Below, one piece after another: positions 512 to 26,508 of a stretch of 26,920 nucleotides of DNA (position 1 is its first letter; each line of letters begins with the position of its first letter). The translations under genes and the position numbers were made by a program. This DNA comes from Octopus sinensis (lineage: Eukaryota). The notes beneath the pieces are model-generated. The model saw nothing but the letters and a program-made list of their open reading frames with translations. It had not been told where the DNA came from and ran no database searches. The DNA lies in assembly GCF_006345805.1 (NCBI RefSeq), contig NW_021834105.1, positions 1 through 26,920 on the forward strand, given 5' to 3'.

Positions 512-2610
512 GGACACTTAGAACTGGCCCGGACGCTATAACTTACGACATTAATTAATAATTTTTTTCTTTAACTAAAGGAAACTCAAAATAGTATGAG
601 ATATACTATTAAATATTATGACCAAAAATTTCTCGTAAATTGTATACTATTTGAAGTGCCCAATAATCTCTCTAAAATTATTTGTTTAAGATCTCTCAAA
701 GTTGTTTTCTTACGCCACATTCAAAAAACTTCTTCCACCAGTTAAAGAACTGGTGTCGGTTTTATTAGCGTCGCTTGTCGTGAATTGGTGCAGAGACGGG
801 AAAAGATTTTTGGTCATACTAATTTGATAGTATTAAACTCAATCGTATTAATTATCGTAACTGGTAATTTTTAAAATCAGAATTTGCTAGTAGCCGCACT
901 GTGGATAGCAAGCGAGTTACCTCGCAAGATTGCTATTAAATAGTAATGAAAATCCTTGTTTTCAAAAATATGTTGTTTGAAACAAATGCAAAATACTCAT
1001 CCAGATTACCACACATAGTAAAATTAGAATTTGTTGTAATATGTCACGAGCTGATCCATTTTCGAAATAACATCTCGACTCTCAATCTGCACTGATATTT
1101 GATCAAGGTACTTCTTTATTGTGGCAGTTACTTCCTTAATTGTCAGAATTGGTCTTTTTCTGTTATTTATGTTTTCGCTAAACCTGCAGAGGAGTCCATG
1201 TCAATGTTGAAAAATATCCTCTAGTGAATTAGAAACGGGAGATCTTTGAGAATATGAGTTTTTAAAGTATAAATTGTTTCACTACCTGAACTGTAGTGCC
1301 GAGATATGACTTGTAGAAGACTTCCCCAACGATGAAAGGAGAGAATTGAATCGCAGTGTGGATATTAATTCATCGATAAAATGTGTGTTATATTCTGCAG
1401 ATAGATTATACCATTTATTAGGGAATCACGCAATGCCCTGTCATTCCGGAGTTGTCTAGAGTTAAGGACGAATGATACTTAAGAACTGAAGGACTTATTA
1501 TTTTATCGATTAAAACTTGTAAATATAATTTATTTTCATCGAATGAGTGCTCAGTACACATAATTAATACTTTTTAGTGATTAAATGTATTTATTCTTAT
1601 CTGCCAAATGAGCCGTGAGGAAAGAATTTGTGTAAAAGACCCACAAGGGCAAGCGAAATATTCACAAGCTCGCACATGCTGCCGTTTAAAAATATTCCAA
1701 TCTTAGAGAAAATTGTGCACTTAAAATATAAGTACATTATCCCAAAGTTGACAAATTGATTGCTTGCCTCAAAGCACTTGTTGTAAAGAACAATCATCTA
1801 ATGTTATTCAAGTATGAACAATCATCTAATGTTAAAATCGATCAATTTTACTTTAAATAAAGCATACAATTACTCGGAAAATTTGAATTTTAGAGAAGTA
1901 TGTTGAATAAACAATTGAATTCCAATGATATAGAAAATAATGAAATTCGACGATCATTTTATTGCACTTTCTGATTATTTTTTATTGACTGAATGTCAGG
2001 CTACATCGTGCGCAGTGCAACGATCATTTTTGATTCTAAACAAAATCTTGACAAAGGATAAGAATTTAAATCAGAAAATGTAAAAAAAGAAAGAAGCTAG
2101 AGAGTGATCACGAGAAAATAAAACAAGCACAACTCTGGAAGTTGAATAATAGAGGAGTCAGAGTATTGATGACATAATTGGCAAACTTATAAAATACTTG
2201 CCAAGCTCACTTCCTCATCAATTATGCGACATACTAAACGGCATATTTACGATACATACAGAAGTTTTACTTGGACAAAGAGTCCTAATTGCTATACAGA
2301 AACAAAGCCGTAAAAACTTAAAATTCAGTTGGATACTTCACACAAAGATTGAAAAAAATAAACATTTGGATTTTTTAATCAAACCGAAAGATACGAGAAG
2401 ACAAAAACTATCAGATATTTCATTGTGGAATTCGACTCGAAAAATTCAACTCACTGATCTTAAATTCCGCAGTAAGTTGTAAAGCATTTCAAGTAGCTCA
2501 AGTTGCATGAAATCGTTGCATGTCAGTTTATTTAAGTGACGAAAATGTTGTTATGATAGATAGAGTTTTTTAAAATTATTTAAACGTGTTTCGAATTCAT
2601 ATATTAATTT

Positions 2611-5174: not shown

Positions 5175-6158
5175 TTAGTATTTAGTTACATCTCCTTTTT
5201 TCGATATTACATCATGTATTCTATTTGGGATCGACAAATACAAGTTTTGAATATAATCATCTCCCATCTTGTTCCATTCATCTTTTGCCATCTCCCATAG
5301 TTGCTTAACGTTCTGAGGGTTTCTATTTCTGATTTTGCTCTTTAAATAATGCCAGCAATTTTCTATTATGTTAAGATCTGGCGATTGTGCAGGCCAATTG
5401 TTTAAAATATTCACTCCTTTTTCAAGCAAATAATTTTTTGTAGACCGTGAAGTATGACATGATGCACCATCTTGTTGGAAAATAAAGTTATCATCATATA
5501 TCTCAGAAAGCCCTTGTTCCAAGATTCGTTGATATTCTACGGAATCTACATTTCCTTCGCACAATATCAAGGCACTTTTTCCATCGTGTCTGATACCGCC
5601 CCAAACCATGATTGAAGGTGCGAATTTCTGAGTTTTCGTTGTGTAGTTCGAATTGAATCTATTTCCAGGAGGTCTCCTTACGAATTCTCGTGCTTTCGAA
5701 ATTAATTCGATGCGGCACTCGTCAGTAAAAATGACCTTATTCCAATCGAATGAAATGTTTCTAGTGCAGAATATTTTTCTCTTCTTGATATTATTAGTTG
5801 AAAGTCTAGGTTTTTTGGCTGCTATTCTTACGAAAAGTTCATTTTTGCGTAAGATTCTTCGTACAGTTTCGACACTGACGGTTTCCGTAATATTTAGGTC
5901 TTTTCTGATTTCATTCGCTGTTTTTTTGGGAAAACGTCGAGACTCACGTACAAGATTCCTTTGAGCACGTGCCGAAAGAATACAATTTCTTCCAGATTTT
6001 GGTCTGTCGTAAAACCCATTTCCATCCAAATACCGTTGGTAAGTGTGATTTACGGCGCATCTGGATATTCCAAGTAAAATCGATATTTCCTGTACGGTAT
6101 GACCATTTTCTCGCATAAAAACAATTCTATGACGCTGTTCAACAGAAAGTCGTGGCAT
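5175..6158 (-). CDS. Tc1-family DDE transposase, 327 aa
   Basis: N-terminal HTH/paired-like region with GR motif; FTDE, MVWGGI, FQQDGASCH and WPAQSPDLNIIEN motifs. The second D and the E are separated by 35 residues. Confidence 0.97.
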   Translation of the reverse strand: MPRLSVEQRHRIVFMRENGHTVQEISILLGISRCAVNHTYQRYLDGNGFYDRPKSGRNCILSARAQRNLVRESRRFPKKTANEIRKDLNITETVSVETVRRILRKNELFVRIAAKKPRLSTNNIKKRKIFCTRNISFDWNKVIFTDECRIELISKAREFVRRPPGNRFNSNYTTKTQKFAPSIMVWGGIRHDGKSALILCEGNVDSVEYQRILEQGLSEIYDDNFIFQQDGASCHTSRSTKNYLLEKGVNILNNWPAQSPDLNIIENCWHYLKSKIRNRNPQNVKQLWEMAKDEWNKMGDDYIQNLYLSIPNRIHDVISKKGDVTKY

Positions 6159-9011: not shown

Positions 9012-11739
9012 TCAATCAAACCAAATACGTTTAAACTCATTCACATCAAAAGAACCATTACATTTGGGACATTTCCTTTTCCTCGTCTGATATAGGTGAG
9101 TCAAGCACTCCAAACAAAACACGTGAAAGCAGGTTGTCAGCACTGCATTCTTCCTATGAATATTACAACACGGACATGTCAGTCTGTCCTAAACATTCCC
9201 TCACATTCTACTACCTTCAGTTCCTTAATCTCATCCAACAACATACTGTCTCCCTCCACTCCCCTCAACTTTGATATCTTGTCCAACTTTCTCTTCAATC
9301 CATCAATCTCCTCCTAACAAAAGTGACAAATCATAACAACCTCATATCTTCTCTCACGGAAATGCCCATCTCTCACCAGTTTACTCTTCTCCTGCAATAA
9401 TCGTTGTGAGTCCTTCAACTGGTCGTAATGTGAGTCAGATATTATTTTGAACTCATCACACTTTTGCAGCACTTCGGAGTATCGACGACCACTCAGCTCA
9501 ATTCGATCATCTCTCAGTCTACACTCAAAATAAGCCTCTTCAACTTGCACTCGCTTTCAAGATTAGTCAATAGTCTTGTTAATGAACTCTCCTTTTCTTC
9601 CAATTGTGAACTAATGTGGATTGTTGTGTCCAACTGATTCCGAAGTAGTCCCTCCTGTTGTCTCCACTCCTCCTTCTCCTTGTTGAGCTCATCAATGACA
9701 TGTCTGTGCTTTATTCTCTTCAATGTTTCATAACAAATTAATACTTCGGCTAACAGTCCCACATAGGCTTGCTCTTTTGCAGTCAACTGGTCTATTAGAA
9801 CTCGATTCCTCTCCTGCATATCTTCTAAAGCTTGGCCTGTCACTTCCATTTCCTGCATTAGAGTATCTTCTTGCTAAAAGTGGCTTCAAATAATCAAGTT
9901 TACCTGTTTGTGCCACGTCAGTTTACGTTTAATGTCTTCGTTGGTAATTCTATGCTGGTTTATACATCTTTGTAGACTCTTTTCGTTCTCACTCGATTCT
10001 TTCAGTCTTCTTATTAGTTCTGAACAAAGGTCCCTAGCCTTGTCCAACTCGCTGATTGTTCCCAATGAATACTATCAATAAACTAATAACTATAAACCTC
10101 AAATTCTTCAAAAATATGTGATTCTGTTCTATAATAATCAGTTAATTAATTGTAATAAAATACCCGGCAAAATCAGGTAGATTGATCTAGTGGTGTTACA
10201 TTAGTAACTAACCTCGTTATTTCTGAGAGTTTCATTTAGTTTAATGTGATATTTATTATTTTTATTCTTCAATTGCTTATTAAAAGCCTGCAGACTATTT
10301 ATAAGATGTCTCATTTCTCTGTGGACGTCATTCGTGTGTTCTTTTATTAAAGCATATTGCTCATTCTCCAGCTTAACCAGTTCTAATTCCTTTTCTTTGC
10401 CTGCTAGTTGTTCAGTCAGTCTAATGATATCCTCCACCTTCTGACTCTCTGATATTTTCTTTCCCGATTTTAAATCATCTTTAATCTGCTGAATTGCTAC
10501 TTTAAGAATATAATTCAATTCGTTGCTTTCTGTCAGTCTGGCCTTCACTCTTGCCAAGTCAGAAATGCAGTGGAAAGCTGTCTTTTCACTGACGACAACT
10601 CGACAGACAAGTCTGGATAGTCCACTCTCTCATTCCCACTCTCCACTAACACAGTCAGCCTGTCAATCTCTTTCTGCATTGTTTTCCAATTCCTGCAGAC
10701 GAGAGTCATTTAAATGTCTAAGATTGTGTTCTTCCAGACGTAGTTTTTGTAGTTCTGTCATATCTTCTGTACTGAGCTGTGGGTTAGTGGGTTCCTGGGG
10801 AGGATTAATGTCCTTTGTCTCTGTGGATATTTTAGAAATGTCTTGCTGTGATTGTTTTAAAGATTCCTCGAGTTTTATTGAATATTTTTCAAGCATGGCA
10901 AATTCATAGTTCAGTTCATCCAATTTCCGTTTATTTTCTGCAGCTGAATTAATTTCAATAGTCAAATTATCATCCGTTTCATTAAGCTATTACGTAATAA
11001 CTCAGTAAGACTAACCTTATAGAATAGTCCACTGTTTTGTTTGTTTACTTTGATCAGTTGGTTGTTTAGACAGACATTTTCATTAGTAAGTTGTGTGACC
11101 AAATCAGCTGAGAGAAGTTTAAGGTTCTCTTGAATAGCACTGTCGGGGGATTCTTTAAGAGTGTTGTAAAACGTGGTTAATTTGTCCAGTTTAGTCACCA
11201 GTCTATGATCTTTGATATATATAGGAAACCCTTCGAAGACCTGATGAAGGATAAGCATTGAAGTATTCGAATATTCAACACGCCTTTGAAATTCCTTCTC
11301 GAGTTCTTCAGTCTCCATTGTCGATATTTTTCTCTGAAACACTTTGAGTGATTCAGTTTCTACAACTAAAAGCAGATGGGTACCATCCGGTGGAATATTC
11401 TCGAAGGAATCACAGTTATAATGTTCAATGAGGCTGCGTACTTCAATATTGTGCTAAGTGTGACTAAGTGGGATTAACTTGGTTCCAATGTCGGTTTATA
11501 AGTGCAAAAAGTGCCTCGTCGGTTTCTCTTCTTTCTTCAAAAACAGCGATTTTGCTTTTTTGTCTAAAGTCTTGATTTTTAGCATATTTGAGGGCTTCAG
11601 AGAGTTTTTGATTTTGAAATCCAAGAATTCGAGATTCCAGTTCTTCCTTGTTATTATTTGAATGTTTATTTAGTACGGAATTAGACGTGCCTTTGAAACT
11701 AGTTCCTTGCAACGTGTCAAAAAATTTATTTTGCCGCAT
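9012..11739 (-). CDS. BRE1: E3 ubiquitin-protein ligase BRE1 (RNF20/RNF40-like histone H2B monoubiquitinase), about 13 exons and about 799 aa after correcting two 1-nt frameshifts
   Basis: N-terminal FQNQKL...[31 protein letters not shown], and C-terminal [29 protein letters not shown]...RKCPKC. Inferred GT-AG introns (plus-strand coordinates): 11454-11478, 11360-11383, 11203-11229, 10987-11015, 10187-10212, 10129-10163, 10072-10097, 9874-9903, 9718-9744, 9519-9544, 9314-9340, 9189-9214. They total 328 nt, leaving 2400 nt. Confidence 0.92.
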
Positions 11740-15699: not shown

Positions 15700-17910
15700 T
15701 TATGCAACACGGCTTTTGAACGCCCTTCTCGGCATAAATCCACCTGGACGGGAAGTCGACGTGACAAAAATGGGAACTGCGTGCCTATTTATAACCAAAT
15801 TGACTACATCATCTGCCGACAAAAAGATGTATGTCTTCTATTGGACTCTCGCTCTTATGGTGGATCACTCGTTGACAGTGACTACAGGGTGGTTGTCAGC
15901 AGATTCAGTCTGCAGAAATCATACTTACTGAAAAAATCAAATCATCGAATGACTCATACACCGGGCAGATACCTGACGGAAAAACTGGTCTTCTCACCAT
16001 CGACCCGAATCATCTACAAATCATCGATTGAAGAATCACTCAAAAATATGAAGCCTGGACTAACGCCGACTGCCGCTTGGAAAGCTATGTCCAGTGGAAT
16101 CCATCAGGCCGCAGATAAATGTGTTGGAAAACACCCAAAGAACAAGAACACTATCAGATTATGCCATCCGGATGTTTTCGCCCTATCGGCTGAACAATAA
16201 GAGCTCAAGTTGACGATTGAGAACACTACGGATCCGGATACCAAACATGCACTGAAAGCCCGACAAGCAATTATTCAGAAACAAATAAAGCGACTGAATC
16301 TCCAATACGGTCGGGATACTCTGACTTCCCGACTTAAAGAGCTGGAATCTCTCAAGGACAATGCACAAATGTTTCAAGCATTACGGCTGCTCAATAGGAA
16401 GAAAAGCAGCCCCAAACCTCGACTCCTAACCAACAAAGGAACTGAAGTATTTGACCCGGTGGAACAGGTAGTAAGCCTTATAGCGGATTTCTTTAAACAA
16501 CGATTCAACACGAACACGGTGCCGATATCACCTTTCTCTGCCCCAGCACGACCTCTGAGGAATAAAATTACTCTGGATGAAGTTAAAAAGGCAGCTAGCA
16601 GGCTAAAAAACAATCGAGCTGCGGGGCCGGACGACATCAGTGCGGAGCTTTTAAAATACGGACCCGAGTCTCTCTTAAGGAATATAGCGAACATTCTGAA
16701 TGATATGTTTACTGAAAACGACTTACTCCACTCGGATCCGGAATTCTAATCGTATCGGGGACAGAGTGAACACCTTTCTGTCGCCGAACCACAGCGGATT
16801 CAGAGAAGGAAGATCTACCGCAGACGTTCTGTGGGGCTACCGATGGCGATGTGCAACCCACCAAAGATTCAAAAGTGTCGCAATCATCCTGGAGATCTAT
16901 ATGTCGAGAGCTTTCGATAGCATTCACCGAGATCTGCTAATGAAGATCCTGCGGAGCTTCTTAGAAGAGGATGAAACCAGAATGATCCAGGTACTACTGA
17001 CAAACACGGAACTTACTGTCCGCCATGGGAAGACTTTGTCCAGACCCTTTTTAAACAAATGTGGGAACTCCTCAGGGTAATTCCCTTTCACCACTGCTCT
17101 TCGTGATTTACCTCGAAGCTTCCCTACGAGAGCTGAGAAGCCTATACGGTGAGTCAATCACCGAAATTATCTATGCGGATGATGTCGATTTCGTGTCGAG
17201 CGACAGATCAGCACTGGCTAGCCTGCTGGAGATTGCACCAGGAAAACTCGGGGAATGGTCTCTAAAAATGAACCCGGACAAGACGGAAGTGGTTATCACG
17301 CTCAGACACTCAACTTATGGAAACATGGAGACTATCCAAGAAGCTTGACTCACTGCTTGGTGACCGGGAGGACATAATGCGTAGAAAAACCCTGGCTGCT
17401 GTTGCTCTAAAAACTGTTATTAAGAATTGTTTATGACACTGCTCGATGGGCCCATCACTACGCTCTAGAGTCTACAACGCTTTCGTCAAACCTGTACTAC
17501 TTTACAACTCCTCAACATGGGGCATTTCTGATTCAGATTTAAAGAACTTCGATTCTCCACAGAAACTAGCTTCGTTCCCTGAACTACTTACACTGGCCGA
17601 AGAAAATCTGCAACTCGACTATTTACAACATCAGCAACTCGGGGCCAATTAGCCGGGACATCGTCAATTGCTGCTGGAGGCTATTTGGACACATCTTGAG
17701 GATGGATCCAACTTCACCTCCCTACGTGACCATGGAAGAATACTTCCTATCAGATGACGTAAAATTCCGAGGACGACTCAGAACAACCCTACCGGTTGTT
17801 CTGCAAGACGACTTGAGGCATTTAAAGAAAACCCTGAAGACCTGTGATGATCTCGACGAACTTCGGATACTGGCCCAAAACCGCGGAAGCTGGAAATCGT
17901 TGGTACAGAA
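15700..17910 (+). mobile_element. Degraded APE/RT LINE (RTE-like), copy 2, 5'-truncated
   Basis: CNTAF..RHKSTW, IYNQIDYIICR, RAAGPDDISAELLKYG, HSGFREGRST, MSRAFDSI, GTPQGNSLSPLLF, YADDVDF, KPVLLYNSSTW, RGRLRTTLP, AQNRGSW. Related to but diverged from copy 1. Confidence 0.9.
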
Positions 17911-20058
17911 CAGACGTCACCAAACTACGGCCCGCGGGCCGATCCGGCCTGCACACATTTTTATCCGGCCCGCGCACTATTTCGAGCTATTCAATTAATA
18001 CCTTAATAATTAACTTAAATAAAAACTTTAATTAAAAAATTAAACTATTTTTGCAAAGATTTAATTCGAAAAAAACTTATCAGCATTAACGTTAAATTTT
18101 TCTTTGTTGCTATGTCTAATATGAAAAGAAAGGGTGACCGCGAATGCCGTGTATTCAATAAATTAGGGAATTGAAGTATTTTTTTGCGAAAGATGAATTA
18201 AAGCAGAAACTTATGTTTAATATGGCCACGAACATCTCTCTGTTATGAAGGAGTATCACTTCGACGTCATTATGAAACGAATCATGTTCCGATATATTCC
18301 AAGTACACTGGAAAGCTACGTGAGGATAAAGTTGAATCACTGAAACGCACTTTACAAAAATTCAACAAGGCCTTATAAAAAAAAATTTTGAAAATAATGA
18401 AAATGTAACAAGAGCTGGATACGAGATAACGAAAATTATTTCACAACACGGGAAACCCTTTAGTGATGGATTATTGAAGCAGTTAATTGTTGAAGCAGTT
18501 AAATTCTTCCTTATTTGATGGAATAAGTTTGTCGGCGAGTTCTGTATCACGGAGAACTGAAGAGCTTGGAAAAATATATATTTACAAATTTGTGAAAAGA
18601 CAAGTAATATGTTGTGGTATTCTCTTGCATTGGATGAGTCAGTTGACATTTCGGGAACATCGTAACTTCTTATTTTTATTCGTGGAGTTGATGAGAATAT
18701 TTCCATAACTGAAGAACTGGCATCTGTTTGTTCTATTCATGGAACAACCACTGGAAAAGATATTTTTGATGAATTGGAACAAACTATAAGTGACTATAAC
18801 CTTGAATGGGAGAAACTGAGTTGTGTTACGATTGACGGGCAAAGAATATGGCTGGTTCTAAAAAGGGTCTAGTTGGGCAAATAACTAATAAATTGGAGGA
18901 ATTACATATTTCAAACACTTTGTTCATTCATTGCATCCTTCATCAGCACGCACTATGTGCGAAGGCTCTTAATATTTCATGTGTGTTGAATCCAGTTATT
19001 CGCATAATAAACTTTGTTCGAGGGAGCTCACTTAATCACCGTCAGTTTAAAGTTTTACTTGACGATTTTGGATCTGAATATTTTGACTTACCATATTACA
19101 CTGCAGTTAGATGGCTTAGCTGTGGTAATGTATTAAATAGATTTTATAAACTCCGAAGTGAGATTGATATTTTTCTAACCAGTAAAAATAACTATTATCC
19201 CGAATTATCAGATCTTGCTTGGCTATCAAAATTATCATTTTTGGTTGATGTTACAACTCACATGAATGAGCTAAATCTGAAATTACAAGGAAAGGAAAAC
19301 TTAATTTGTGATTTCTACAGGATAATTAAAGCATTTCGACAAAAATTGATGTTATTCGAGTCACAACTTGGAGTACGTCAGTTTTCACACTTTTCTTGTT
19401 TTAAAAGTTTTTGTGAGGCAAACTGTAATGAGATCGACATTACTTTCCAAATTGGGATTATCAAAGAATTAAAACATCATTTTTTACATAAGTTTTCTGA
19501 ACTTGACAAAATTGAAAGCGATATAATTTTGTTCGAAAATCCATTTTCTTGTAATGTTGAAAATGTTCAACATGAATTACAATTAGAAGTTATTGACTTA
19601 CAATCAAATGAACAGCTCAAAGATTGTCACAGACGGACCAAACTCGCTGAGTTCTACGAATATCTCAAGGATGATGAGTTTCCGAGACTAAAGAATTTTG
19701 CGATAAAGATGATTTCTATATTTGGCACAACTTACCAATGTGAGCAAACGTTTTCGAGGATGAAATATGTTAAGTCTGCCCATCGTGCAAGATTGACTGA
19801 CGGACACTTAAAATCAATTCTCATGATAGGATGCAGCAATTTAAAACCAATATTGATGAACTTATCAAAAAAAGATCACAGTTCCATAGCTCTCATTAAA
19901 ATTTTTGTTTACTTTATTTTTGTTTAAATTAGTTTTTATTGTAAAAAACACACTTATGAATTTCTAGTAAAACTATAATCCTATGCACGTGCTCCGGCCC
20001 GCGTTCATTGTGTTGGGGTCAATCCGGCCCGCGAGTGCATAAAGTTTGGTGACCCCTG
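17911..20058 (+). mobile_element. hAT DNA transposon, Buster/SPIN (GTF2IRD2-like) group
   Basis: Termini CAGACGTCACCAAACT and the reverse complement of CAGGGGTCACCAAACT (14/16). Subterminal CGGCCCGCG repeats occur at both ends. Flanking 8-mers GTACAGAA and GTCTAGAC match at only 5/8. Confidence 0.88.
18112..19927 (+). pseudogene. hAT transposase; 5' half frameshifted, 3' 359 aa open (18848-19927)
   Basis: KRKGDRECRVF..., RRHYETNH zinc finger, ALDESVD, VTIDG, HCILHQHALC, VRWLS, LNLKLQGK, and hAT dimerisation motif FGTTYQCEQTFSRM...RLTD. Confidence 0.9.
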
Positions 20059-20066
20059 GTCTAGAC

Positions 20067-20234: not shown

Positions 20235-20274
20235 GTTTTAACTTTTTTAAATCCTAGATTGGAGATATAAATAA

Positions 20275-20680
20275 CTAGCTCGGCAGCTCGCTTCGCTCAC
20301 CGCGACCTAGCTCCTGCGGAGGGCCTGTTTCATCAAACAACTATAAGTTTATGTAGATGTATAAAACTACCTGGTTTAATGTAACCCTATTCTATCGCCT
20401 GTTGATAAACGATGTTTGTCGTCCGTCCTTCCTTGGCATATATGAATAAATTTTCTCTTCTGCCTACCTTCGAGCATCCCACATACAGCTGTCCATGTGA
20501 AAAGCACTCATTCTCTAAAAATAACCCAACTACCTTTAATGACTGTCACTGGGCCTTGTTTATTGTCATTGCAAAACTCATCCTCAAAGGAAATTGCAGC
20601 CTTTTAAATCTAAATGGTAATTCATCAGAAATTATCGGAATTCGTGGAATATAAACATCCTCACCTCTATACTTAATTAA
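20275..20680 (-). mobile_element. Helitron 3' remnant: PIF1-like helicase C-terminus plus 3' hairpin and CTAG end
   Basis: Minus frame [13 protein letters not shown]...[28 protein letters not shown]...CFSHGQLYVGCSKVG...TNIVY ends at TAG 20387-20389. An imperfect GC-rich hairpin (GCGGTGAGC-GAA-GCGAGCTGC) and a CTAG|T terminus at 20275 follow. Confidence 0.9.
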
Positions 20681-20722
20681 TTACCTTAAGGTGCCCGTTT
20701 TTTCTTCAGCTTCGTTTTTCTT

Positions 20723-20939
20723 CCTTCGGTTATCTATTTAAAAAATATTTTTGAATAATAAAAAATATTAGGAAAAAAGAGGCATACAGAAAATAAATTC
20801 TATCTTTACGACGAAAAACTTATTTTCTTAAGGTCGTCTTCCCTCCTTCGGTTATCTATTGAAAAAATTATTTTTGAATAATAAAAAAGTTTAGGAAAAG
20901 ATACATACCGAAAATAAATTCTATCTTTACGAAAAACTT
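20723..20939 (+). repeat. Imperfect tandem duplication, period about 122 bp
   Basis: CCTTCGGTTATCTATT...TTTTTGAATAATAAAAAA...GAAAATAAATTCTATCTTTACG occurs at about 20723-20821 and 20845-20939. Confidence 0.85.
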
Positions 20940-20983
20940 AACTAAATAGTAAATATTTTTACGCAAATTCTTCAGATTGCGCT

Positions 20984-21142
20984 GTCAATTGGTGGTAAAT
21001 TGTGTTAATGATTGTGCTAATGTGGTTTCAACTATCAAAGTGTTTTTCAAAATCTGTTAATTGCACACTCTATTCAAGGTCATGCGTCAATTGGTGGTAA
21101 ATTGTGTTAATGATTGTGCTAATGTGGTTTCAACTATCAAAG
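20984..21142 (+). repeat. Perfect 57-bp direct repeat (20984-21040 and 21086-21142), 45-bp spacer
   Basis: GTCAATTGGTGGTAAATTGTGTTAATGATTGTGCTAATGTGGTTTCAACTATCAAAG is identical in both copies. Confidence 0.95.
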
Positions 21143-23935: not shown

Positions 23936-23955
23936 AACAAAAATTTTGCTATTTT

Positions 23956-23967
23956 TTGGTTGCCCTA
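23956..23967 (-). repeat. Solo right terminus of the TAGGGCAACCAA hAT family
   Basis: TTGGTTGCCCTA is identical to 26161-26172 and is preceded by a similar TGC(T/A)ATTTTTT subterminal motif. Confidence 0.65.
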
Positions 23968-24346
23968 CTAATAATGCAATTATTGGTTTTTTCTGGAAAT
24001 ATGGGCGTATTTAATGCAATGAAAGCGCAGATTCGTCGTTTTTATGCTTATTTTTCAAATTTATTTGTTTTTAGACTGTCTTGTAATGTAGGCCCAGTGA
24101 TTTTGATAAACTTCATCGAAAAATTCCTGTCAGCATTCACACTTCCATACCAATTATCGGCATATTTAAATTCTTGTAATATTTTTAGATTGTAATTTTT
24201 GTATGTGTGTACAATGGAGAGATTTATACGTTTGAAATATATCCCTTCTTTATAATAGACAATACAAATTTCGTTTCAACAATCGGGTCTGGAGGAGACA
24301 CAGCATTCGATTGGATAACCACACAGTATTTTTTAATAATTATGAC

Positions 24347-26172
24347 TAGGGCAACCAATTGCAATTTTTTGCAATTAAATATAATTTAATTAAAATTCGA
24401 TAAATAATAAAGTAATGAATAGACATTAATTTTAATTATATTTTTATTCGATTTAAATTTGCAATTTTTTGCAATTTTTTGTAGTCATTTTACAATTTTT
24501 TGCAATTTTTTAATATTAAAAAATAATATAATTATAAGTAAAAGATTATTAAAACGTGTTTTAGTTGTTTGTTGTAATGGGTAAAAGGACAGTGTCACAG
24601 AAAATTTCATTTTATGCAAAGAAATTCCCCGAGTTTGTTATTGACAGTGAAGGGAATTTATTTTGCTCCAATTGCTCAACTGTTGTACGGTGTGACACAA
24701 AATTTTTTGTTGATGCGCACCGTTCTTCAAAAAAACATTAAAAGCACACAGTATTTCTTTGAATTTAAATTTATAGAATGGACAAATTCATCTCAGAGTT
24801 CACAAACATTTCTTTCGGCGATAACGGATACTCGAAAGGATTGGGGGATCAAAGTAACACAAGCGTTTTTGGAGGCAAACATACCAATTTATAAAATCAG
24901 ACATCCTTCCCTCATACGGCTTTTTGAGCAGGAAACATATCCTTTGCCATCTGAATCATCTTGCAGGTTAAATGTTAAAGAAATATCAAAATATAAAATT
25001 AATACCATTCAGACTCATTTACTGTTGTTTTTTTAAGTTATTCAATAGTGGGGAATGTGTTTTTTTTGTTTGTGATGAAGCCCAAATCAATGGAACTCGT
25101 TTTTTAATTACTTTGATTGGGAAAATCTCCACTCCAAAAAATCTTCATTTAGTATCGTGTACCAATCTATATTATCCGCCTACTACTTCAACAATTTGTG
25201 TTGAGGTGGACAAAGTAATAAAGAAATTTTCTATTGAACGTGAAAATTTTATATTATTCGTTACAGATGGGGCGAGATATATGACCAGTGGTATATATAA
25301 ATAAATTTAATTTTAGCTGGGGCATCAATGAAATTGATATACCAAAATCTTTTCCACGTGACTTGCGTGTCACATTTATTGCACAACTGTGCTCTAAAGA
25401 TTAAGGCATACTTCGCAGATGTTGATGAATTGATTTCGTCTATAAAGGCTGCCACAGTCAAAAACAAGAGACGTTTGGAGATGTTTTCACGAATCGGAAA
25501 TCCACCCGAAGTTGTGGTTACAAGATGGGGAAGCTGGCTAAAAGCAGCAAAATATTACTCCCAGAATCTTCCAGAAATTATTAAAATCGTATCTGAATTT
25601 GAAGGAGATGGAGTTTTAATACAAAATGTTTTAGTTTTTAATTATTTTAGGCAAAAAAATCAGTGAATAATCCTACGTTGTTTCCAAGCTTAACCCAAAT
25701 CAGTTCAAATTATTTGGGATTAATTGAAATGATTTCAAATACTGAATTGCTTGATTACTCCATTGCAACAGCTTATGGTGATCTAAACACCCTAGACTTT
25801 ACATCAGATCCATGCGACATAAAATCCTATATATCAAAAAAGCTTGAGAAATCAGGAATACTAAGTATTCTTGAATTCTCAAATAAGAATCTATCGCCAG
25901 AAGTTTATTCACATCTCAGAAAATGTAGCGCAAGTTCAGCATCTATCGAAAGGGCAATATCTCTTTTGACGAAAATTCTTAGTAAAGAGAGGAACTTTAA
26001 ACCTGAAAATGTTCAGGAATATTTGATTTCCTATTACAATAAATAATTTCGTTAATTTTTTGCATAATGTAATGTTTACAATTAAAAAAATTATTTTTGC
26101 AATTTTTTACAATTTTTAAAATTCATTTTTGCAATTTTTTTTATTAAAAAGTGCAATTTTTTGGTTGCCCTA
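24347..26172 (+). mobile_element. hAT DNA transposon (CGGBP1-like zinc finger plus DDE), full-length
   Basis: Perfect 12-bp TIR TAGGGCAACCAA, perfect 8-bp TSD ATTATGAC (24339-24346, 26173-26180), and subterminal TGCAATTTTT repeats at both ends. Confidence 0.95.
24577..26046 (+). pseudogene. hAT transposase with micro-introns (24751-24776, 25291-25316, 25628-25650; possible degenerate 25013-25037)
   Basis: Zinc finger LFCSNC...DAHRSSKKH, EANIP, CDE, VTDGARYMTS|AGASMK, HVTCVSHLLHNC, TRWGSWL, GVLIQN|AKKSVNNP, SASIER. The introns join ORF-track pieces in frame; one extra 1-nt loss is needed near 24739. Confidence 0.85.
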
Positions 26173-26508
26173 ATTATGACCAATTATTCTGGAATATACA
26201 CTACGCAAAATGAGGCCATTGGAATAGCTCACGATGCGATTTAAGAAGCCGCAAAGACTGATCGACGAACAGGAGGATCTTCCCATAGTATATTTTGATA
26301 AATAATATTTTAGTTTCCACAATATCTGTTAATGGGATAAGTTTAGTGGCGTTATCTCCACTCTTCTAACATGTATTGCTCCTAATCTTCATCATTTTAT
26401 TATTTTAAAACACTTACCTTAAATTATTGAAAAAATACTATAAATTTTTGAAAAATGACTCACGTCTGGACTGTTACAATTATAAGATCCAAATACCACA
26501 AAAAGTAT

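Follow-up and report, generated by a model that had tools for sequence, protein, structure and literature searches.

The distal part of a 26,920-nucleotide stretch of DNA deposited under Octopus sinensis (NCBI RefSeq assembly GCF_006345805.1, contig NW_021834105.1, positions 1 to 26,920; the whole stretch is referred to below as the window) raises the question of how the transposase gene of a DNA transposon can be interrupted by introns of only 23–26 nt, and from where such introns came. The element concerned is a hAT transposon that is sharply bounded and occupies window positions 24347-26172 (1,826 bp). We consider it probable that this is a young, compact hAT element of 1.83 kb, whose transposase gene is split by micro-introns of the host type (three certain and one probable), and that these introns were gained on the branch leading to the element. 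The further proposal, that an ancestrally intronless, horizontally mobile hAT lineage acquired three or more spliceosomal introns de novo after entering a genome with minimal introns of 23–30 nt, is put forward tentatively, as a possibility rather than an expectation.

Every GT..AG pair spanning 15–60 nt was enumerated as an intron candidate. The frame starting at ATG 24577 (MGKRTVSQK...CSNCSTVVRCDTKFFVDAHRSSKKH) does not run through the gene: the coding signal passes through all three frames before it ends at TAA 26044-46, and the gene contains four GT..TAG segments (24751-24776, 25024-25048, 25291-25316 and 25628-25650, numbered here as introns 1 to 4), with GT...AG boundaries in all four and an arrangement that has a frequency of 5e-4 among all 23–26-mers in the window. 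Introns 2 to 4 display a GC content of 8–20%, compared to 32–38% in the exons, and none of their lengths is a multiple of three. Two of these three (introns 2 and 3) hold in-frame stops, with read-through of intron 3 meeting three of them, whilst retention of intron 4 leads to a frame shift; upon removal of all three, exons 2–5 form 1,197 nt without a stop. It follows from this gene structure that a full-length transposase would be obtainable solely after splicing, as the original prediction for this locus had proposed. That prediction also named three clean introns of 26, 26 and 23 nt: those at 25291-25316 and 25628-25650 stand, whereas the segment at 24751-24776 is not clean, with a TAA lying upstream and the resulting frame being wrong. 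A further 25-nt gap had been described as carrying AC in place of GT, which was a misreading: 25024-25048 starts with GT, the AC sits 3 nt upstream, and removal of the segment restores the frame.

A search with the spliced protein returned 48 homologues (25–45% identity, E-values from 5e-115 to 4e-27). The majority are continuous open reading frames (ORFs) of ~457 aa on contigs of ~2 kb, that is, of element length, and with more than 40 such continuous homologues the spliced product pairs gaplessly at its junctions. The relatives are labelled P0001-P0048 (proteins) and L001-L059 (59 fetched loci); a continuous ORF is seen for at least 35 homologous proteins of near-full length and for 14 metagenome loci of full length. 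In an alignment of 26 sequences (the window protein and 25 homologues) the three junctions lie inside conserved blocks and are free of gaps. The intron 2 junction reads ..THLL-GECVFFVCDE and is gapless against all 25 homologues; removal of intron 3 gives DGARYMTS-A-GASMKLIY (family consensus DAARYMxSAG) and removal of intron 4 gives EGDGVLIQN/AKKSVNNP (family consensus EGDGxLVxxAKEA; the slash marks the junction), so that the latter two junction peptides quoted in the original prediction (the second as DGVLIQN/AKKSVNNP) were obtained exactly and without gaps. A 22-nt variant of intron 2 is possible, leading to ..THLLF-GEC instead of ..THLL-GEC at an unconserved stretch of the alignment; a 29-nt variant of intron 3 was disfavoured, as it yields TTG where SAG is conserved. 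Because GT..TAG ends, reading frame, AT-richness and gapless alignment to homologues all agree, introns 2 to 4 behave as introns: by these comparative criteria they are certain spliceosomal introns, whilst the act of splicing itself is what we infer from them.

The columns that are invariant in the 26-sequence alignment include D147/E148, D211, E422, W289/W292, C235 and H238, which are the catalytic and signature residues of hAT transposases. Exon 1 aligns with the N-terminus of the family, with C30, C33 and H48 invariant and H54 at least 90% conserved; the N-terminal CxxC...H-x5-H pattern is thus present and conserved, and a weak match to the U1-C zinc finger was obtained with the family profile (E 0.013). 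Pfam DUF659 was matched by all 26 aligned members. For the spliced protein, AlphaFold gave a model with a predicted local distance difference test (pLDDT) score of 91.6 and values of at least 95 around all three junctions; each of the 12 best PDB matches to this model was Hermes hAT transposase (E 3.6e-10 to 5e-7, template modelling score ~0.5). The predicted product of ~452–457 aa thus comprises a C2H2 zinc finger at its N-terminus, a DNA-binding region like that of Hermes, an RNase-H DDE core with an all-alpha insertion and a hAT C-terminal motif, and on sequence and modelled fold the element is assigned to the hAT superfamily of DNA transposons as an autonomous-type member. The original identification as a hAT transposon is borne out by its 8-bp target-site duplication (TSD), terminal inverted repeats (TIRs), DUF659 match and Hermes-like fold. 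The layout of the element is summarised in Table 1.

Table 1. Features of the hAT element and its flanks, in window coordinates (slashes mark the point of intron insertion within a codon).
Feature	Position	Strand	Description
Left TSD	24339..24346	.	ATTATGAC; 8 bp, same letters as 26173-26180
Left TIR	24347..24358	+	TAGGGCAACCAA; 12/12 complementary to 26161-26172
5' subterminal region and leader	24359..24576	+	TGCAATTTTTT at 24360, 24460, 24470, 24491 (1 mismatch) and 24501; GC 16%
Exon 1	24577..24738	+	ATG to His54; C2H2 zinc finger C30, C33, H48, H54; HRSSKKH
Defective exon-1 tail	24739..24750	+	In-frame TAA 24739-41, then AAGCACACA
Probable intron 1	24751..24776	+	26 nt, GTATTTCTTTGAATTTAAATTTATAG; GT..TAG; 15% GC
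Exon 2	24777..25023	+	Linker and DNA-binding helices to ..QTHL; open frame, aligns to homologues
Intron 2	25024..25048	+	25 nt, GTTGTTTTTTTAAGTTATTCAATAG; phase 2, codon CT/T, Leu138
Exon 3	25049..25290	+	RNase-H-like core, D147/E148 and D211 (invariant); DUF659 match E 2.4e-8
Intron 3	25291..25316	+	26 nt, GTATATATAAATAAATTTAATTTTAG; phase 1, G/CT, Ala219; GC 8%
Exon 4	25317..25627	+	CxxH block, TRWGSW motif, start of all-alpha insertion domain; C235, H238, H241, W289, W292 invariant
Intron 4	25628..25650	+	23 nt, GTTTTAGTTTTTAATTATTTTAG; phase 0, between N322 and A323
Exon 5	25651..26046	+	Insertion domain; SASIERAIS with catalytic E422; hAT C-terminal motif; stop TAA 26044-46; E422, R423 invariant
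3' subterminal region	26047..26160	+	TGCAATTTTTT at 26098, 26130 and 26152; GC 17.5%
Right TIR	26161..26172	-	Reads TTGGTTGCCCTA on + strand; exact reverse complement of left TIR
Right TSD	26173..26180	.	ATTATGAC; same letters as left TSD

Classical hAT anatomy consists of an 8-bp TSD, a terminus of the TA(G)NG type and subterminal repeats. The TIR terminus of the window element fits the hAT consensus YARNG, (T/C)A(A/G)NG, and the ends are perfect, as had been stated: the TIRs pair at 12/12 positions and the 8-bp TSD is identical on both sides. Perfect ends together with the TSD suggest a recent insertion, with transposition activity itself being predicted only. The TGCAATTTTTT motif occurs 11 times in the window against 3.8 expected (0/100 shuffles reached 11), and 8 of these 11 matches fall at the element's two ends; by analogy to Ac and Hermes, these repeats are predicted transposase-binding sites. 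The same ends recur in the relatives: L001 exhibits a TIR TAGGGCAAG.. (1776-1790), an 8-bp TSD GTAATCAT and a continuous 477-aa ORF, whilst L007 (17-28 and 2220-2231) and L010 (138-151 and 2169-2182) carry the same 12 nt TAGGGCAACCAA at both ends, despite their proteins being just ~42% identical. The first 8 nt of the TIR are present in 20/60 fetched loci and subterminal (T)TGCAA-T-run motifs were seen again in L001-L003; repeat finding on L002-L005 gave no clear ends. End recognition thus seems, from these sequences, to be unusually conserved in the family. In addition, a lone right terminus belonging to this hAT family (TGCTATTTTTTGGTTGCCCTA, 21 nt) is located at window 23947-23967, 380 bp upstream of the element, and is identical to 26152-26172 at 20/21 positions; a partner end or internal sequence for this lone terminus was looked for and none found. 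A related, degenerate hAT transposase fragment with an internal deletion lies at window 1696-2065 (+), where tblastn matched residues 237-268 and 395-437 (E ~1e-4).

The window also offers a host gene for comparison. A BRE1/RNF20-type RING ubiquitin ligase gene lies on the minus strand (~11742-9015), shares ~40% identity with animal BRE1 across the full length (100%) of a 262-aa query, and contains at least seven GT..AG introns of 25, 29, 30, 27, 26, 24 and 26 nt, most of which end in TAG; several of them coincide with gaps or breaks between high-scoring segment pairs in tblastn alignments to homologues. By length (23–26 nt), GT[A/T]...TAG ends and AT-richness the transposon introns are of the same class as those of BRE1, and the original description of the transposon introns as host-sized therefore holds, the BRE1 introns in the same window ranging from 24 to 30 nt. 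Within this gene, the region around 10204-10071 probably contains micro-exons, and 10530-10680 needs two frame changes without a canonical intron, which may reflect errors in the sequence or an unusual mode of splicing. Within the transposon, the leader (24546-24586) and the intron 4 region (25616-25656) share 71% identity over 41 nt, with GTTTTAG in both: this likeness may be due to chance in AT-rich DNA or may hint at another intron in the 5' leader.

As to the origin of the transposon introns, the original prediction had left the choice between introns acquired and introns shrunk to the host size class: comparison with relatives favours acquisition, based on their intronless genes, the nested position of the window protein and the gapless junctions, and does not favour shrinkage. 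Of the relative loci, 14/59 align as one continuous full-length match and many others contain 1–2-nt decay frameshifts; an insertion of 20–30 nt at codon 138, at codon 219 or between codons 322 and 323 was found in none of the 59 fetched loci. Two candidates of this kind were rejected: in L024/L025, a surplus of 20 nt close to where exons 1 and 2 meet represents a frameshift in a decayed copy, and the matches in L029, L032 and L033 that start exactly at residue 218 come from internally deleted copies rather than from an intron boundary. A conventional intron is present in L015 (410-727) and L020 (799-1144), a lineage 46–49% identical, where it measures 318 and 346 nt, reads AAG/GTA(C/A)GT...TTCTGTGCAG and falls at residues ~176-180, which are not the window positions. 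Because this intron occupies another site, introns have on this comparison entered the family more than once, each sized like those of its host. In a neighbour-joining tree with the most distant homologue as its root, the window protein is nested among intronless relatives and was basal in 0/100 bootstraps, although the tree is weakly resolved. Since the junctions are gapless, the introns would be net insertions and not converted coding sequence; since the relatives are intronless or carry an unrelated intron and no coding residues have been lost, gain is the most economical explanation. Gain over shrinkage is thus most likely on the sequences compared.

The mechanism that we propose would combine a conventional transposition cycle with dependence on the host spliceosome. 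The transposase, by inference from the hAT family, would bind the subterminal TGCAATTTTTT motifs as well as the TAGGGCAACCAA termini, excise the element and re-insert it elsewhere, duplicating 8 bp of the target. Active enzyme would arise from spliced mRNA alone, whilst unspliced or partly spliced RNA would give truncated proteins, either through a stop in intron 2 or 3 or through the frame shift from intron 4. The micro-introns would have been inserted on the branch to this element, their form being set by what the host spliceosome recognises.

Several points weigh against the reading of a young element with gained, host-type introns. The TAA at 24739-24741 directly follows the conserved His54 and lies upstream of the intron 1 donor, and excision of the 26 nt at 24751-24776 leads to the wrong frame, as a length of 1 mod 3 would be needed: because of this TAA and the frame offset within 24739-24776, the copy as assembled cannot give a full-length protein. 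At the protein level, the match of the window protein to Dimer_Tnp_hAT (PF05699) is weak (E 0.17, 12.1 bits against a cut-off of 21.4), this domain being weakly matched at E ≤0.01 by 7/26 family members, and the window protein gave no match to Pfam zf-BED. The splicing is deduced solely by comparing sequences, one copy of the element was examined and the evidence for the identity of the host is circumstantial. Regarding the timing of the gain, the tree is star-like, with the closest relatives only ~45–55% identical, and the source collections list mainly uninterrupted ORFs, which biases the sample towards intronless members; the gain may thus be old, or may have occurred in another host with later shrinkage. 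As for further copies, exact look-up of the Tc1 ORF (another element in the window) and one exon ORF in protein collections gave no match, and a scan of genome contigs returned one contaminant contig from a metagenome-assembled genome (MAG). Two records labelled as bacterial, P0039 (NCBI MAG 'Fusobacteriaceae bacterium') and L006 (MAG 'Saprospiraceae bacterium', JAHDHF010000298.1), contain copies of this eukaryotic hAT family, most likely due to eukaryotic contamination of the bins.

The defect between exons 1 and 2 can be described more closely. Amongst the GT..AG pairs of 15–60 nt, no canonical intron removes the TAA, keeps the conserved His and reaches the exon 2 frame. Other joins were examined manually, namely non-canonical starts, an intron of 55 nt that begins at GT 24722, and a micro-exon arrangement in which CACACA sits between introns of 23 and 26 nt. 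All of these fail: the stop stays (T/AA), or there is no GT, or the conserved HRSSKKH zinc-ligand motif is deleted. The segment at 24751-24776, whose 3' part resembles introns 3 and 4, is a probable intron that is in frame only with one base missing upstream. The repair that we favour adds one base after CAT (24738), which would abolish the stop and bring the 26-nt intron into frame, with KKH-x-KAHK/WTNSSQ as the product; with one more T, the sequence would read CATTTAAAAG (24736-24752). The opposite repair, deletion of one base to give a continuous frame with no intron, is less plausible because the AT-rich stretch would then read YFFEFKFI, where the linker is polar in relatives. The defect could be either a genuine inactivating deletion or a one-base assembly error. 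For the latter, a neighbouring Buster-like hAT element (window 17908-20062, also 20273-21142) offers a comparison: over 2.2 kb it shares 97.5% identity with a copy in Octopus sinensis assembly GCA_006345805.1 (contig VCDQ01001748.1, labelled L060; annotated as XP_029656889.1, 'GTF2IRD2-like'), from which it differs by 35 substitutions and 13 indels. At 10 of these 13 indels the bases are missing in the window (nine of 1 nt and one of 19 nt) and roughly half of the indels lie in homopolymer runs; the ORF of the present hAT element and the Tc1 ORF are otherwise clean.

Could the introns be older than the branch of this element, having started as ancestral introns of conventional length at these positions that shrank along with those of the host? 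The intron in L015 and L020 shows that the family can hold ordinary introns, databases are biased to intronless ORFs, and nearest relatives at ~45–55% identity leave a long unsampled branch. However, that intron is found elsewhere, no relative amongst the fetched loci has an insertion at any of the three window positions, and the element is nested among intronless relatives. DNA transposons usually persist through horizontal spread, and a long co-evolution with one shrinking genome is less likely for this reason; we therefore regard an older origin as unlikely. Far less credible is the explanation of a decaying pseudogene in which the 23–26-nt segments are random insertions or assembly artefacts. 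The stop and frame defect at 24739-24776 would be in keeping with it, as would the 13 indels of the neighbouring Buster-like element relative to its sister copy, which show that decay or assembly indels do occur in the window. These indels are of 1–2 nt, or of 19 nt without GT..AG ends, whereas the segments in question are all GT..TAG (5e-4 per 23–26-mer) and far richer in AT than the exons; their removal gives a gapless fit through the most conserved motifs, exons 2–5 (1,197 nt) show no other lesion, and both TIRs and TSD are perfect. We consider such a pseudogene hardly believable.

A different question is whether splicing of these introns could be regulated as in the P element, with retention dependent on stage or cell type leading to a truncated DNA-binding repressor. 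Retention of intron 2 would end the protein at about residue 140, keeping the zinc finger and DNA-binding helices whilst losing the catalytic core, and Microsporidia splice their shortest introns with low efficiency, according to work cited in PMC13644364. Against this, the introns resemble ordinary host introns and display no special sequence feature, so that splicing may be constitutive; the analogy is in our view quite improbable. The gain of host-type micro-introns on the branch of a young hAT element thus remains the explanation that we prefer.

The host genome itself needs consideration, since the DNA is deposited as octopus sequence. The BRE1 gene matches no octopus or other protein above ~41%, and because of this the window does not represent DNA of the octopus itself. 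Dicyemids live in cephalopod kidneys, and O. sinensis is a host of Dicyema japonicum. In animals, introns that measure less than 30 bp were reported just for myxobolid myxozoans and D. japonicum (PMC13644364), dicyemids being endoparasites of cephalopods (PMC2222250), and the D. japonicum genome exhibits 36.7% GC, 49% repeats and many LINEs (long interspersed nuclear elements; PMC6736024), a profile that fits the window. The genome that houses the element is thus probably that of a dicyemid, on circumstantial evidence from these sequence features. The L060 contig, in turn, could be either dicyemid contamination of the octopus assembly or the result of the element having moved between parasite and host.

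Other transposons of the window differ in their gene structure. The Tc1-like transposase (window 5175-6158, minus strand) is an intact, uninterrupted ORF of 327 aa with DDE_3 and HTH_Tnp_Tc3_2 domains, and due to this uninterrupted ORF not every DNA transposon in this genome has introns. In the N-terminal half of the Buster-like transposase (18100-18900, +) there are ~6 frame changes without extra sequence, which could be either decay or long-read assembly error; comparison of the window copy with L060 revealed frameshifts and no introns. The absence of introns from the Tc1 and Buster hAT genes had been claimed beforehand, and both comparisons agree with it.

The consequences of this gene structure concern annotation as well as intron evolution. 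In genomes with ultra-short introns (dicyemids, myxobolids and some ciliates), ORF-based annotation would call intact elements broken pseudogenes, and gene predictors with a minimum intron length would miss such elements. With intronless relatives, the ancestral state is zero introns, which makes the 3–4 micro-introns candidates for recent gain in a lineage that is usually portrayed as reducing only; the gapless junctions indicate short AT-rich insertion and not coding sequence turned intron. The need for a spliceosome capable of processing 23–26-nt introns may inactivate the gene in ordinary hosts and hence act as a barrier to horizontal spread. If the de novo gain is true, reduced genomes still create introns, beyond losing and shrinking them; a mobile gene would have been remodelled to depend on an unusual host spliceosome, possibly confining its activity to that host, and the element together with its intronless relatives would form a dated natural experiment on intron origin and on the recognition of 23-nt introns.

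In comparison to known systems, the element shares with Hermes from Musca domestica and other hATs the 8-bp TSD, a short YARNG-type TIR, subterminal repeats and a DDE RNase-H core with an all-alpha insertion. It differs from Hermes in that the proteins are only ~15% identical, the window protein (~455 aa) and element (1.8 kb) are much smaller, the window gene contains micro-introns, and its zinc finger is nearer to the U1-C/matrin type than to Pfam zf-BED. Closer is a clade of intronless, ~2-kb hAT elements of DUF659 type from metagenomes and assemblies (the P0001-P0048 and L001-L059 relatives), with 37–45% full-length identity, the same domain order, TAGGGCAA(CCAA) termini and TGCAATTTTT-like subterminal motifs, although continuous ORFs are found there and 3–4 micro-introns in the window element. 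This clade may be a candidate equivalent of the Repbase hAT-19 family, for which Yellan et al. 2021 (PMC8097297) reported a link with CGGBP1.

The ultra-short introns of D. japonicum and the myxobolids resemble those of the element in their length of 22–30 nt, their minimal GT(a)...AG form and the A residues a few bases before AG, features that the BRE1 introns of the window display as well. Those introns were described for host genes, whereas introns in transposon genes are discussed neither in PMC13644364 nor in PMC6736024, the D. japonicum genome paper, where DNA transposons are not discussed ('transpos' occurs 0 times). DDE transposase genes are, moreover, often summarised as intronless (bioRxiv 10.1101/2021.09.26.461848).

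Intron-bearing transposase genes are nevertheless found in maize Ac (4 introns), medaka Tol2 and the Drosophila P element (3 introns, with regulated IVS3), a point that we set beside the element described here: in all of these the transposase needs spliced mRNA and the introns are host-like, but intron sizes are conventional there, whilst those of the window element (23–26 nt) lie at the lower limit of the sizes known in animals. Splicing that is regulated has been demonstrated for P, whereas the window element is known from its sequence; the fragment of ~140 aa expected from retention of intron 2 is formally like the P-element repressor. As Ac, Tol2 and P already carry introns, current understanding is not overturned: intron-bearing transposases are textbook knowledge, and what stands out here is the extreme size of the introns, together with good evidence of their gain from an intronless ancestor.

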